A DNA stretch of 64,000 nucleotides from Phyllobates terribilis (lineage: Eukaryota): positions 386,074,001 through 386,138,000 of the forward strand of contig NW_027362769.1 in assembly GCF_046119375.1 (NCBI RefSeq), read 5' to 3'. Position 1 is the first letter of the stretch. Each line of letters opens with the position of its first letter. Shown piece after piece: positions 5,189-59,087 of the stretch. The notes below the pieces were generated by a model. That model did no database searches, had not been told where the DNA came from, and saw nothing but the letters and a program-made list of their open reading frames with translations. The translations under genes and the position numbers were made by a program.

Positions 5189-5257
5189 TTATATACTGAG
5201 GCGGATCCCTCTCCTTCCCTCCCATGGGCTGCGCCCAAGTGTCATGGTGACTCAGCA
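5189..5257 (-). promoter_or_regulatory. Copy A proximal promoter: TATA box and antioxidant response element
   Basis: TATATAA on the minus strand at 5195-5189. GTGACTCAGCA at 5247-5257 is a perfect RTGACnnnGCA ARE with an embedded AP-1 site. Confidence 0.7.
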
Positions 5258-5520
5258 CTGCACAGAAGGTGGCGTCTAGAATGAAGTGGCTTCTGCGAGG
5301 GATGACGTGGGGAGCAGGGCCTCCTCCATCCAGGCCAGAGCTGACACCAGGAAGCCGCCTGGAGTTGTGGCTGCCGGTGATGGGATGAGGCTCGTGGAGA
5401 GATTAAACTCTAAGAGGACTGAGGTGCTGCATAATGGAGCCATGGCCTTTTCATACGTAGGACTAAGACTAAGTGATCTGATGTGGTGTTTTGGGGGCAC
5501 GGAATAAGTGGATGTTCCTA

Positions 5521-5685
5521 CATAGAATCATAGAATGTTAGAGTTGGAAGGGACCTCCAGGGTCATGGTGTTCAACCCCCTGCTCAATGCAGGATTCACT
5601 AAACCGTCTCAGACAGATGTCTGTCCAGCCTCTGTTTGAAGACTTCCATTGATGGAGAACTCACCACCTCTCGGGGCAGTATGTT
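5521..5685 (-). mobile_element. CR1 LINE 3' end fragment
   Basis: catagaatcatagaat is the reverse complement of the CR1 (ATTCTRTG)n tail, followed by gttggaagggacctc...ttcaaccccctgctc typical of CR1 3' ends. Confidence 0.8.
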
Positions 5686-5689
5686 GCAG

Positions 5690-54100: not shown

Positions 54101-57100
54101 TCTTGTACATAGGAGCAGTATTATAGTAGTTATATTCTTGTACATAGGGGCAGTATTATAGTAGTTATATTCTTGTACATTTGGGGCAGTATTATAGTAG
54201 TTATATTGTTGCACATAGGAACAGTATTATAGTAGTTATATTCTTGTACATAGGGGCAGTATTATAGTAGTTATATTCTTGTACATTTGGGGCAGTATTA
54301 TAGTAGTTATATTGTTGCACATAGGAACAGTATTATAGTAGTTATACTGTTGTACATAGGGGGTAGTATTATAGTAGTTATATTCTAGTACATAGGAGGC
54401 AGTATTATAGTAGTTATATTCTTGTACATAGGGGGCAGTATTATAGTAGTTATATTCTTGTACATAGGAGCAGTATTATAGTAGTTATATTCTTGTACAC
54501 ATGGGCAGTATTATAGTAGTTATATTCTTGTACATAGGAGCAGTATTATAGTTATATTCTTGTACATAGGAGCAGTATTATAGTAGTTATATTCTTGTAC
54601 ATAGGAGCAGTATTATAGTAGTTATATTCTTTTACATAGGGGGCAGTATTATAGTAGTTGTATTTTTGTACATAGGATAAGTATTATAGTAGTTATATTC
54701 TTGTACATAGGAGCAGTATTATAGTAGTTATATTCTTGTACATAGGAGCAGTATTATAGTAGTTATATTCTTGTACATAGGGGGCAGTATTATAGTAATT
54801 ATATTCTTGTACATAGGGGCAGTATTATAGTAGTTATATTCTTGTACATAGGGGCAGTATTATAGTAGTTATATTCTTGTACACATGGGCAGTATTATAG
54901 TAGTTATATTCTTGTACATAGGAGCAGTATTATAGTTATATTCTTGTACATAGGAGCAGTATTATAGTAGTTATATTCTTGTACATAGGAGCAGTATTAT
55001 AGTAGTTATATTCTTGTACATAGGGGGCAGTATTATAGTAATTATATTCTTGTACATAGGGGCAGTATTATAGTAGTTATATTCTTGCACACAGGAGCAG
55101 TATTATAGTAGTTATATTCTTGTACATAGGAACAGTATTATAGTAGTTATACTATTGTACATAGGGGGAGTATTATAGTAGTTATATTCTAGTACCTAGG
55201 GGGCAGTATTATAGTAGTTATATTCTTGTACATAGGGGGCAGTATTATAGTAGTTATAGCCTTGTACATAGGGGTCAGTATTATAGTAGTTATATTCTTG
55301 TACATAGGCGCAGTATTATAGTAGTTATATTCTTGTACATAGGGGGCAGTATTATAGTAGTTATATTCTTTTACATAGGAGCAGTATTATAGTAGTTATA
55401 TTCTTGTACATAGGGGGCAGTATTATAGTAGTTATATTCTTGTACATAGGGGCAGCATTATAGTAGTTATATTCTTGTACATAGGAGCAGTATTATAGTA
55501 GTTATATTCTTGTACATAGGGGGCAGTATTATAGTAGTAATATTCTTGTACATAGGAGCAGTATTATAGTAGTTATATTCTTGTACATAGGGGCAGTATT
55601 ATAGTAGTTATATTCTTGTACATTTGGGGCAGTATTATAGTAGTTATATTGTTGCACATAGGAACAGTATTATAGTAGTTATATTCTTGTACATAGGGGC
55701 AGTATTATAGTAGTTATATTCTTGTACATTTGGGGCAGTATTATAGTAGTTATATTGTTGCACATAGGAACAGTATTATAGTAGTTATACTGTTGTACAT
55801 AGGGGGTAGTATTATAGTAGTTATATTCTAGTACATAGGAGGCAGTATTATAGTAGTTATATTCTTGTACATAGGGGGCAGTATTATAGTAGTTATATTC
55901 TTGTACATAGGGGGCAGTATTATAGTAGTTATATTCTTGTACATAGGAGCAGTATTATAGTAGTTATATTCTTGTACACATGGGCAGTATTATAGTAGTT
56001 ATATTCTTGTACATAGGAGCAGTATTATAGTTATATTCTTGTACATAGGAGCAGTATTATAGTAGTTATATTCTTGTACATAGGAGCAGTATTATAGTAG
56101 TTATATTCTTTTACATAGGGGGCAGTATTATAGTAGTTGTATTTTTGTACATAGGATAAGTATTATAGTAGTTATATTCTTGTACATAGGAGCAGTATTA
56201 TAGTAGTTATATTCTTGTACATAGGAGCAGTATTATAGTAGTTATATTCTTGTACATAGGGGGCAGTATTATAGTAATTATATTCTTGTACATAGGGGCA
56301 GTATTATAGTAGTTATATTCTTGTACATAGGGGCAGTATTATAGTAGTTATATTCTTGTACACATGGGCAGTATTATAGTAGTTATATTCTTGTACATAG
56401 GAGCAGTATTATAGTTATATTCTTGTACATAGGAGCAGTATTATAGTAGTTATATTCTTGTACATAGGAGCAGTATTATAGTAGTTATATTCTTGTACAT
56501 AGGGGGCAGTATTATAGTAATTATATTCTTGTACATAGGGGCAGTATTATAGTAGTTATATTCTTGCACACAGGAGCAGTATTATAGTAGTTATATTCTT
56601 GTACATAGGAACAGTATTATAGTAGTTATACTATTGTACATAGGGGGAGTATTATAGTAGTTATATTCTAGTACCTAGGGGGCAGTATTATAGTAGTTAT
56701 ATTCTTGTACATAGGGGGCAGTATTATAGTAGTTGTATTCTTGTACATAAGATAAGTATTATAGTAGTTATATTCTTGTACATAGGAGCAGTATTATAGT
56801 AGTTATATTCTTGTACATAGGAGCAGTATTATAGTAGTTATATTCTTGTACACATGGGCAGTATTATAGTAGTTATATTCTTGTACATAGGAGCAGTATT
56901 ATAGTTATATTCTAGTACATAGAAGCAGTATTATAGTAGTTATATTCTTGTACATAGGGGGCAGTATTATAGTAGTTATATTCGAGTACATAGGGGGCAG
57001 TATTATAGTAGTTATATTCTTGTATATAGGAGCAGCATTATAGTAGTTATATTCTTGTACATAGGGGGCAGTATTATAGTAGTTATATTCTTGTATACAG

Positions 57101-58992
57101 GAGCAGTATTATAGTAGTTATATTCTTGTACACAGGAGCAGTATTATAGTAGTTATATTCTTGTACATAGGAACAGTATTATAGTAGTTATACTCTTGTA
57201 CATAGGGGGAGTATTATAGTAGTTATATTCTAGTACCTAGGGGGCAGTATTATAGTAGTTATATTCTTGTACATAGAGGGCAGTATTATAGTAGTTATAT
57301 TCTTGTACATAGGAGCAGTATTATAGTAGTTATATTCTTGTACATTTTTATACCTAAATGAAACTCCTTTCCGTCGTCACTCTTCTGTGGTTTGAACTCG
57401 TGCAGCAGGTTCTCGTAGTAGAAAGCTACTCGGACACTTGTCATGGGACAACCAATTTCTCGGAAATACTCTTCTACCTCTCCTTTACTGTCAAAGTGAG
57501 GCACGTGCAGCTTTCCCCCGGTGGTCTTCTTCACATTTTCCAGTCCGCTGTAGACTACCAGTTCCAGATTTAGGCGTTTGCACAGATCCGCTACCAATTT
57601 TCCCTGTAACACAAACAATACAAGGAAGGATATTCTTATTCTTTGATACAATTATTTGAGTTTTTCAGGCTCCTAAATGACAAAATGGTTCTTTTATCCT
57701 CGTTGGTGACCTGTCTTCCTTACTGCTTATGACAAAAAAAGCTAAAATACAGACACAGAGTGCAAGTAGGACAATCTGCTACAAGGGGTCACTGCGGAGC
57801 CTTAACCTCTACTCTCAGTTTGCTCCCTGGGAAGGCACATGAGCTCCTGAGACTCCTCACTTTCCTCCATGATCCTCTGGCTGCAGTTTTCCTGCATGGT
57901 CTCCTCATTATCTCACCTGGATAATTTCTTTGTCCTTCTTAGAGCCTTCGAAAGCATTGGTGACTACGAAGGCCCCATACGCCCCGCTCAGGGCGGCCTC
58001 CAGGCTCTTCTCATCGTCCAAGTCCGCGGACACGACCTCCGCTCCGGCCTCCTTTAGCTTTGCAGCTGCCGGTTTGCTGGTGTCTCGAGTCACAGCCCTG
58101 ACCGCAAAGGTGCCATCATCCAGGAGAGCGGAAGCGACCGATCCACCCTGAGCTCCTGGGGAGAGAGGGGAACACACAAGAAAGGCTAAACTAAAAATAT
58201 GTTATGGTCCTGGTGGACATTTGGAGTGAATGAAGTCCCTCAGCCTCACAGCGTGGGTCCCTGATATGAGCTACGTCTTTAGCCATGAGGTCAATGATAA
58301 AATACTGTCTTACTGCAGCCACCACTAGAGGGAGCTCTGGAGCAGTCTGTATACAGTCCTATCACTGGCCTCTTCCTGCAGCCACCACTAGAGGGAGCTA
58401 AGGAGCTGTCTGTATACTGTCCTATCACTGGTCTCTTCCTGCAGCAACCATCAGAGGAAGCTCAAGAGCTGTATGTATAGAGTCCTATCACTGGCCTCTT
58501 CATGCAGCCACCACTAGAGGGAGCTGTGGAGCTGTCTGTATACAGTCTTATCACTGGTCTCTTCCTGCAGTCACCACTAGAGGGAGCTCTGGAGCGGTCA
58601 GTATATAGTCCCATCACTGTGCTCTTCCTGCAGCCAGCACTAGAGGGAGCTCTGGAGCTGTCTGTATACTGTCCTATCACTTGTCTCTTCCTGCAGTCAC
58701 CACTAGAGGGAGCTCTGGAGCAGTCTGTATATAGTCCTATCACTGGCCTCTTAATAAACCCACCACTAGAGGGAGCTCAGGAGCTGTCTGTATATAGTTC
58801 TATCACTGGCCTCTTCCTGCAGCCACCACTAGAGGGAGCTCAGGAGCAGTCTGTATACAGTCCTATCACTGGGATCTGTGTGCATGGTGTCACCAGCGTG
58901 GATGGGGTAGAGCTTGTGCGCTCTGTGGTCCGGTAGTTAGTAATTGACTTACCTGTGGCTCCGAAGACCACGACTACCCTCTTCCCGGCCAT
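48196..58992 (-). CDS. nmral1: NmrA-like family domain-containing protein 1-like, copy D (complete, 296 aa, most divergent)
   Basis: Exons 58992-58953 ([14 protein letters not shown]), 58155-57917, 57603-57354, 48732-48542 and 48366-48196 ([29 protein letters not shown]...AFKW*). 891 nt, GT-AG introns, AATAAA on the minus strand at 48179-48174. Confidence 0.93.
48780..57345. repeat. 35-36-bp AT-rich satellite (gtacataggagcagtattatagtagttatattctt), about 240 copies, filling intron 3 of copy D
   Basis: Continuous array between exon 4 (starts 48732) and exon 3 (ends 57354) of copy D. Confidence 0.98.
58310..58870. repeat. About 62-bp tandem array (core ctgcagccaccactagagggagct) in intron 1 of copy D, about 9 copies
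   Basis: Tandem units; core shared with 22035-22665. Confidence 0.9.
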
Positions 58993-59060
58993 GGAGCACT
59001 GGGTCAGTACAGATTGGTGGATATGAATCCTTCTGCGTCTTCTCCTCCGCTGTCTTCTCT

Positions 59061-59087
59061 CTTATAGTCGATTGCTGTGACTCAGCC
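59061..59087 (-). promoter_or_regulatory. Copy D proximal promoter: TATA box and ARE
   Basis: TATAAG on the minus strand at 59066-59061; GTGACTCAGCC at 59077-59087. Confidence 0.65.

Follow-up and report, generated by a model that had tools for sequence, protein, structure and literature searches.

The stretch of Phyllobates terribilis DNA analysed here, 64 kb long and called the window in what follows, holds four tandem, intact NmrA-like genes, A, B, C and D, which we delineated by self-comparison and manual splicing. All splice sites of the four genes are GT-AG and their open reading frames (ORFs) are open throughout; B, C and D have five coding exons each. Just upstream of A, C and D stands a short sequence of the antioxidant response element (ARE) type, followed by a TATA motif, and the origin and probable use of this promoter arrangement are our subject. 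In window coordinates, the genes and their promoter elements are:

1726..5158, minus strand: gene A, exons 1-3 (5119-5158, 2094-2332, 1726-1975); exons 4-5 lie past the left edge of the window
5195-5189, minus strand: TATA box of gene A, TATATAA, 51 bp downstream of the ARE
5235..5246, minus strand: second TGAC-type half element of gene A, CATGACACTTGG, directly 3' of the ARE; conserved in gene B, Pyxicephalus and X. tropicalis
5247..5257, minus strand: ARE of gene A, TGCTGAGTCAC in gene orientation, -98 from the ATG
10139..20456, minus strand: gene B, 299 aa; exons 20417-20456, 15696-15934, 15286-15535, 11100-11290, 10139-10318
20513..20519, minus strand: TATA box of gene B, TATATAA, -63 from the ATG
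20569..20579, minus strand: degenerate ARE of gene B, CGCTGAGTGAC, at the position homologous to the ARE of A
41548..41558, plus strand: ARE of gene C, TGCTGAGTCAC, -88 from the ATG
41575-41580, plus strand: TATA-like motif of gene C, TATAAG, 16 bp downstream of the ARE
41595..45587, plus strand: transcript of gene C, 301 aa; coding exons 41637-41676, 44185-44423, 44658-44907, 45005-45195, 45327-45512; poly(A) site 45587
48196..58992, minus strand: gene D, 296 aa; exons 58953-58992, 57917-58155, 57354-57603, 48542-48732, 48196-48366
59066-59060, minus strand: TATA-like motif of gene D, TATAAGA, 10 bp downstream of the ARE
59077..59087, minus strand: ARE of gene D, GGCTGAGTCAC in gene orientation, -94 from the ATG

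Exon 2 matches the human HSCARG/NMRAL1 structures (E 1e-21), the motif FGATGAQGG, a Rossmann GxxGxxG N-terminus, is present in all four genes, and their closest full-length homologs carry the NmrA-like domain PF05368. The nearest proteins are dendrobatid: Ranitomeya imitator (97%), Dendrobates tinctorius (94%) and Phyllobates terribilis itself (91%). The duplication that separates A from B is young (7% third-position differences), whereas the divergence between A/B, C and D is old: at identical residues the third codon position differs in 28-42% of cases, and the DNA of exon 3 is 66-70% identical, compared with 78-87% for exon 2 (e.g., 57354-57603 and 57917-58155 in gene D). C and D are convergent, and the gene list of D. 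tinctorius shows the same layout for this pair.

On the forward strand the three sites read GTGACTCAGCA (5247-5257), TGCTGAGTCAC (41548-41558) and GTGACTCAGCC (59077-59087), exactly the letters and positions listed in an earlier note on this DNA. In gene orientation the shared element is GCTGAGTCAC, at -98, -88 and -94 from the ATG of A, C and D respectively. It has the same orientation relative to its own gene in all three cases and precedes the TATA motif by 51, 16 and 10 bp, in agreement with the note (10-52 bp, co-oriented). The established Nrf2/small-Maf element is RTGACnnnGC(A), and its core TGACnnnGC is present in A, C and D through the exact 9-mer TGACTCAGC. Gene A, with its flank (5242-5257), fits all 16 positions of the extended consensus TMAnnRTGAYnnnGCR; gene C fits RTGACnnnGCA, not the TMA part.

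The 9-mer TGACTCAGC has exactly three matches in the 64 kb, both strands included, against 0.49 expected, and none of 100 dinucleotide shuffles reaches three. We also looked for enrichment of the loose pattern RTGACNNNGC in the window and found none (13 matches, 12.7 expected). The signal is thus the exact motif together with its placement. The surrounding promoter sequence aligns poorly, as the note had remarked: in every pair among A, C and D the best local match is a 10-12-mer containing the element, and nothing else aligns. In gene C we also note an inverted second core, ATGACTGTGC at 41541-41550, which overlaps the ARE GCTGAGTCAC through a common GC and creates a near-palindromic double site at 41541-41558.

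Gene B provides a natural single-base variant of the promoter of A. The homologous site and the TATATAA are both kept, while one C-to-G transversion (GTCAC to GTGAC) turns the TGAC core into TCAC, so that the site reads TCACTCAGC and fails the core TGACnnnGC. We predict that this core change has cost gene B its ARE input or weakened it. Because the comparison of B with A amounts to a single-base ARE knockout within one window, the hypothesis of ARE control is cheap to test.

To the four genes of the window we can compare the promoters of three frogs with small genomes, X. tropicalis, Pyxicephalus and Spea bombifrons; nine frog promoters were aligned. The X. tropicalis nmral1 promoter, which is clearly homologous to those of A and B, reads TGCTGAATCAC-AGTGACAC and then TTATAAAT, and fits the variant RTGAYnnnGC. 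The A/B-type gene of Pyxicephalus (P0233) reads TGCTGAGTCAC-ACTGACAC, followed by TATAAAT. In Spea bombifrons GCTGA[G/C]TCAC followed by a TATA box is found upstream of all three tandem paralogs; no other match occurs in the 22 kb, for which 0.12 matches are expected. The sole invariant block over the nine aligned promoters is GCTGA.T.AC. Judged by this alignment, the ARE-type element of frog NMRAL1 genes is deeply conserved, over approximately 200 million years across frogs. An inverted duplication is also present upstream of X. tropicalis nmral1 (L001 9161-9874), where perfect TGCTGACTCAC sites occur twice more, at 9250 on the plus and at 9789 on the minus strand, and where the proximal TGCTGAATCAC-AGTGACA module is repeated at L001 9161 (minus strand).

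The RNA evidence consists of assembler contigs rather than 5'-end data, and four runs of the same organism (X1, X2, X19 and X20) were compared with gene C. All four introns of gene C are confirmed as GT..AG joints, the poly(A) end lies at 45587, and depths range from thousands to more than 100,000. The samples are apparently untreated, and within one study the depth of gene C varies several-fold from run to run. One spliced gene C contig accounts for all bin sums of run X19; its exon-1 arm of 79-80 nt places the start at approximately 41595, which by arithmetic on the contig lies 20 nt downstream of the first T of TATAAG and 37 nt downstream of the ARE. The earlier note had named start sites far from the TATA boxes as evidence that would speak against its reading, and X19 does not show such starts for this gene. 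Strings specific to exon 2 of A and exon 4 of D are present in the same runs. RNA runs also contain 0.56-0.61 of the words of gene B exons 2-3 (a measure of presence only).

The relationship of these genes to the two known NMRAL lineages was examined with a tree of 83 sequences, rooted on a bowfin (Amia) gene, and with the neighbourhoods of the genes in relatives. The tree contains two tetrapod clades, I and II. Clade II (ultrafast bootstrap, UFBoot, 100; Shimodaira-Hasegawa-like approximate likelihood ratio test, SH-aLRT, 89) holds all frog cluster genes together with salamander, bird, crocodile and eutherian NMRAL1, and within it the frog cluster genes form a single clade (UFBoot 99, SH-aLRT 86). 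Clade I (UFBoot 100, SH-aLRT 95) holds genes of Sphenodon, salamanders, marsupials and many eutherians, including proteins that NCBI named after ENSP00000305954, an identifier that a literature search did not find. The window genes fall outside clade I, whose only frog members are genes of Ascaphus and Bombina on other chromosomes. Clade I is likely the NMRAL2 lineage. The NMRAL2-type paralog is annotated as an intact protein of approximately 299 aa in many mammals (P0296, P0283, P0295, P0311, P0282, P0265 and others), among them the primates Cercocebus, Aotus, Carlito and Microcebus as well as bats, shrews, squirrels and marsupials. The Amia gene adjoins an Ets/PEA3 gene of the ETV5 kind, a neighbour seen in Amia only; this fits an NMRAL2-side position for the bowfin gene and leaves the unrooted topology unchanged.

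Synteny points the same way as the tree. The X. tropicalis member of the frog clade has a heme oxygenase gene (HMOX2) on one side and a LITAF-domain gene on the other, the three-gene cluster of Spea adjoins a LITAF-domain gene of the same kind, and bird NMRAL1 has a DnaJ-domain neighbour. From Pfam domain and position, the LITAF-domain neighbour is taken to be CDIP1 and the DnaJ neighbour DNAJA3. The window itself has no flanking gene: pieces of HMOX2, the LITAF-domain gene, DNAJA3 and an ETV5-like gene gave no real match in it. Since approximately unbiased (AU) tests leave alternative placements unrejected (see below), the assignment to NMRAL1 leans on synteny as well as on the tree, and on these two grounds we assign the window genes as lineage-specific co-orthologs of NMRAL1 (the locus of HMOX2 and the LITAF-domain gene), not of NMRAL2P. 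The earlier note had suggested instead that they descend from the lineage that became a pseudogene in humans; neither the tree nor the neighbours in Xenopus and Spea, the kind of synteny check it had itself proposed, support that suggestion.

What survives of the link to NMRAL2P is a likeness of promoters. The promoter of human NMRAL2P (LOC344887) has a validated ARE, ARE1, with the sequence GTGACACTGCA at -82..-72, which binds NRF2/sMAF and is NRF2-dependent (PMC7573654). The exact 11-mer GTGACACTGCA recurs in a clade-I coding gene of a bat (Hipposideros) at -186 from the ATG, followed by TTTATAA at -97, and its orientation relative to the gene is that of the frog elements. This match connects clade I with NMRAL2P and shows that both paralog lineages have an ARE upstream of a TATA-type motif; the likeness between the frog cluster and NMRAL2P is one of regulation, possibly ancestral. 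The note's phrase "possible functional counterparts of human NMRAL2P" survives in this regulatory sense and not in the sense of orthology. Bird NMRAL1 differs: its promoter is of the CpG-island kind (67% GC) and lacks both a proximal ARE and a TATA. In the bird gene the opposite strand carries a GCTGACTCAC site approximately 1 kb past the ATG (L004 11069-11078, minus). The provisionally placed promoter of the bowfin gene shows no sense-oriented proximal ARE. The true ATG exon of this gene lies at L006 6720 and was missed by the annotation, which places the start in an intron; a GTGACTTTGCA is found just downstream (L006 6857-6867).

A wider evolutionary scenario can be built from these observations, and we offer it tentatively, as a possibility that we ourselves regard as doubtful. 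The ARE and TATA promoter would be ancestral for vertebrate NmrA-like genes and precede the split of NMRAL1 and NMRAL2. The NMRAL2 lineage (ARE1 of the human pseudogene, the bat coding gene) and frog NMRAL1 would have kept it, while amniote NMRAL1 would have exchanged it for a CpG island. Frogs above Ascaphus and Bombina would have lost NMRAL2 and expanded ARE-driven copies of NMRAL1 as a functional stand-in for it.

For the window itself, the explanation that we favour is that A, C and D have compact promoters with a single ARE, or NF-E2-type Maf recognition element (MARE), kept by selection from the ancestral frog nmral1 promoter and acting through Nrf2, that B has lost or weakened this input, and that the genes are NMRAL1 co-orthologs; we consider this probable, with considerable room for error. 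Specifically, a cap'n'collar basic leucine zipper (CNC-bZIP)/small-Maf element GCTGAGTCAC would lie approximately 90-100 bp before the ATG, followed by a TATA motif 10-51 bp on, a short 5' untranslated region (UTR) and the ATG exon. The element would have been inherited from the ancestral frog nmral1 promoter and held by selection as its surroundings diverged. Oxidants or electrophiles would inactivate Keap1, after which Nrf2-small-Maf heterodimers would bind the ARE and the TATA-bound machinery would be recruited. On this model the NADPH-sensing proteins A, C and D would belong to the frog's Nrf2 battery and be highly expressed in some tissues. Nrf2 control, an inferred mode of action, is the best-supported mechanism. 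The Nrf2/small-Maf interpretation of the earlier note fits the consensus, the placement and the conservation over paralogs and frog species, while its choice of Nrf2 in particular goes further than the letters, which suit Nrf1, NF-E2 and Bach1 equally well.

Several observations weigh against this explanation. The sequence cannot separate Nrf2 from Nrf1, Nrf3, NF-E2 p45 or Bach1, and AP-1, too, has a perfect site in TGAGTCA; literature searches returned neither a link between nmral1, of frogs or of other organisms, and Nrf2 nor Nrf2 binding or induction data for any frog. The element of gene D ends in GCC rather than GCR at its 3' end, and the C-type ortholog of Pyxicephalus, whose ATG exon resembles a second exon, has no such element within 10 kb upstream. 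The placement of the TATA motifs is also imperfect. A TATA-box core promoter has TATAWA some 25-32 nt upstream of the transcription start, and the X19 start of gene C, at approximately 20 nt, falls below this spacing. Longer and apparently rarer 5' ends of gene C lie upstream of the TATA motif, at or before the ARE, in three runs (adapter-tagged contigs reach 41524 in X1 and X2 and 41552 in X20), so that its start sites are either dispersed or not fixed by the contigs. In gene A the TATATAA is just 37 nt from the ATG (5156-5195), where B has 26 nt more and other frogs have 55-60 nt, and a TATA-directed start would leave a 5' UTR of less than 10 nt. Gene B is transcribed despite its broken ARE core: the presence of its exons in RNA means that an intact ARE is unnecessary for detectable transcription. 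Finally, the AU tests formally reject neither a grouping of the C-type gene with clade I (p 0.24) nor one of the whole frog cluster with clade I (p 0.084).

Some of these points feed directly into other explanations. The most serious keeps the CNC/small-Maf site and changes its users: Nrf1 or Nrf3, NF-E2 p45 in blood cells, or the repressor Bach1 would be the chief factors, and control would be constitutive, tissue-dependent or heme-dependent rather than inducible through Keap1 and Nrf2. TGCTGAGTCAC equals the NF-E2 consensus (T/C)GCTGA(G/C)TCA(C/T), which is common to all CNC-sMaf dimers, and both the very high RNA in apparently untreated samples and the several-fold depth differences between runs of one study would suit such users. 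However, nothing favours them over Nrf2, and the ARE of the related human NMRAL2P was NRF2-dependent in experiment (PMC7573654); we therefore regard this explanation as unlikely, if well worth keeping in mind. More improbable still, in our estimate, is that the element serves mainly as an AP-1 site (TPA response element, TRE, TGAGTCA) through which Jun/Fos drive growth-factor, JNK-stress or tissue-specific transcription, with no part for Nrf2. The perfect TRE heptamer TGAGTCA/TGACTCA is indeed found in A, C, D, Pyxicephalus and all three Spea genes. But the X. tropicalis homologue TGAATCA breaks the TRE and keeps RTGAYnnnGC, and none of the nine frog promoters departs from the GC dinucleotide beyond the heptamer; together these favour a CNC-bZIP/small-Maf site over plain AP-1. 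The mammalian NMRAL2-type ARE GTGACACTGCA likewise contains no TRE, and yet binds NRF2/sMAF (PMC7573654).

Two further explanations remain. Coding orthology of the frog genes, or at least of the C type, with the NMRAL2P lineage would account for the promoter type that they have in common with NMRAL2-type genes, and would use the latitude left by the AU tests. We consider it very unlikely: the best tree puts the frog cluster with NMRAL1 (100/89) and as one clade (99/86), the X. tropicalis and Spea members adjoin heme oxygenase and/or a LITAF-domain gene, and Ascaphus and Bombina have separate clade-I genes on other chromosomes. Moreover, C, D and A/B are physically tandem both here and in D. 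tinctorius. Least credible of all, to the point that we give it hardly any weight, is that the three motifs are chance matches or neutral, functionless leftovers of a duplicated promoter. It is true that the window has no excess of the loose ARE pattern, and that the three copies are not independent because the paralogs share ancestry. On the other hand the 10-mer is unchanged at -88 to -98 amid flanks too diverged to align, and the element recurs in Spea, Pyxicephalus and Xenopus, each time oriented alike and paired with a TATA.

The frog NMRAL1 ARE is a new instance of an element type that is already known, and it can be set beside three familiar cases. The ARE of human NQO1, an example of an Nrf2-target ARE, is GTGACTCAGCA, and A and C have the identical 11-mer; A also fits TMAnnRTGAYnnnGCR. 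As in Nrf2 target genes, the frog sites occupy promoter-proximal positions, have been conserved in evolution and precede genes for NADPH-linked redox proteins. They differ in the GCC of gene D, which replaces GCA/G, in that Nrf2 binding and induction are predicted from sequence in the frog, and in that the frog promoters have a single element 10-51 bp from the TATA motif and not a distal enhancer. Human NMRAL2P, like the frog genes, is an NmrA-like family locus with a promoter-proximal ARE, in its case NRF2/sMAF-binding; it belongs to the clade I/NMRAL2-type lineage as opposed to the NMRAL1 side, its ARE variant lacks the AP-1 core, and it is a pseudogene/long non-coding RNA where the frog ORFs are intact. 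NMRAL1/HSCARG (PDB 2wm3, 2exx, 3e5m), an NADPH sensor beside HMOX2, shares with the frog genes the plan of five coding exons, the length of approximately 299 aa, the GATGAQGG Rossmann motif and the clade; its neighbours recur beside the Xenopus and Spea genes. Here the differences are that the frog has four or more tandem copies instead of one, and promoters with TATA and ARE where bird NMRAL1 has a CpG island.

If the element is Nrf2-responsive, NmrA-like NADPH sensors would join the core oxidative-stress battery in amphibians. Duplication and positive selection of the NmrA-like gene family have been reported for frogs (PMC11342244), and an Nrf2 response, if true, would offer a mechanism for this pattern. 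In human NMRAL2P, for its part, the validated ARE looks like a promoter retained from a gene that many mammals still keep in protein-coding form, and the similar architecture in frog NMRAL1 genes suggests an old Nrf2 control of the whole family.

The rest of the window is dominated by repeats. Minisatellite arrays with units of 21-109 bp add up to approximately 30 kb, or 47% of the window. Intron 3 of gene D is filled with an 8.5-kb array (a 35-bp unit repeated 243 times), and 30-bp arrays of 6.5 and 2.8 kb lie between genes B and C. The main arrays and one further exon are:

26125-39403, 48781-57345 and 59398-63993: minisatellite arrays, with smaller ones elsewhere
41000..41213, minus strand: alternative terminal exon of gene D, joined through its acceptor at 41213 to the end of exon 4 (48542); the product is predicted to end in ...IIKDAK-EPQY*

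Long overlapping ORFs in several frames at 26-39 kb were considered as genes and rejected: they are generated by the minisatellites, being products of 25-86-bp tandem arrays, and have no credible Pfam match. The 48542 to 41213 joint of gene D is seen at a contig depth of 34-129 in three of the four RNA runs. This splice skips all of gene C together with the usual last exon of D, and its acceptor lies upstream of the gene C promoter on the opposite strand.

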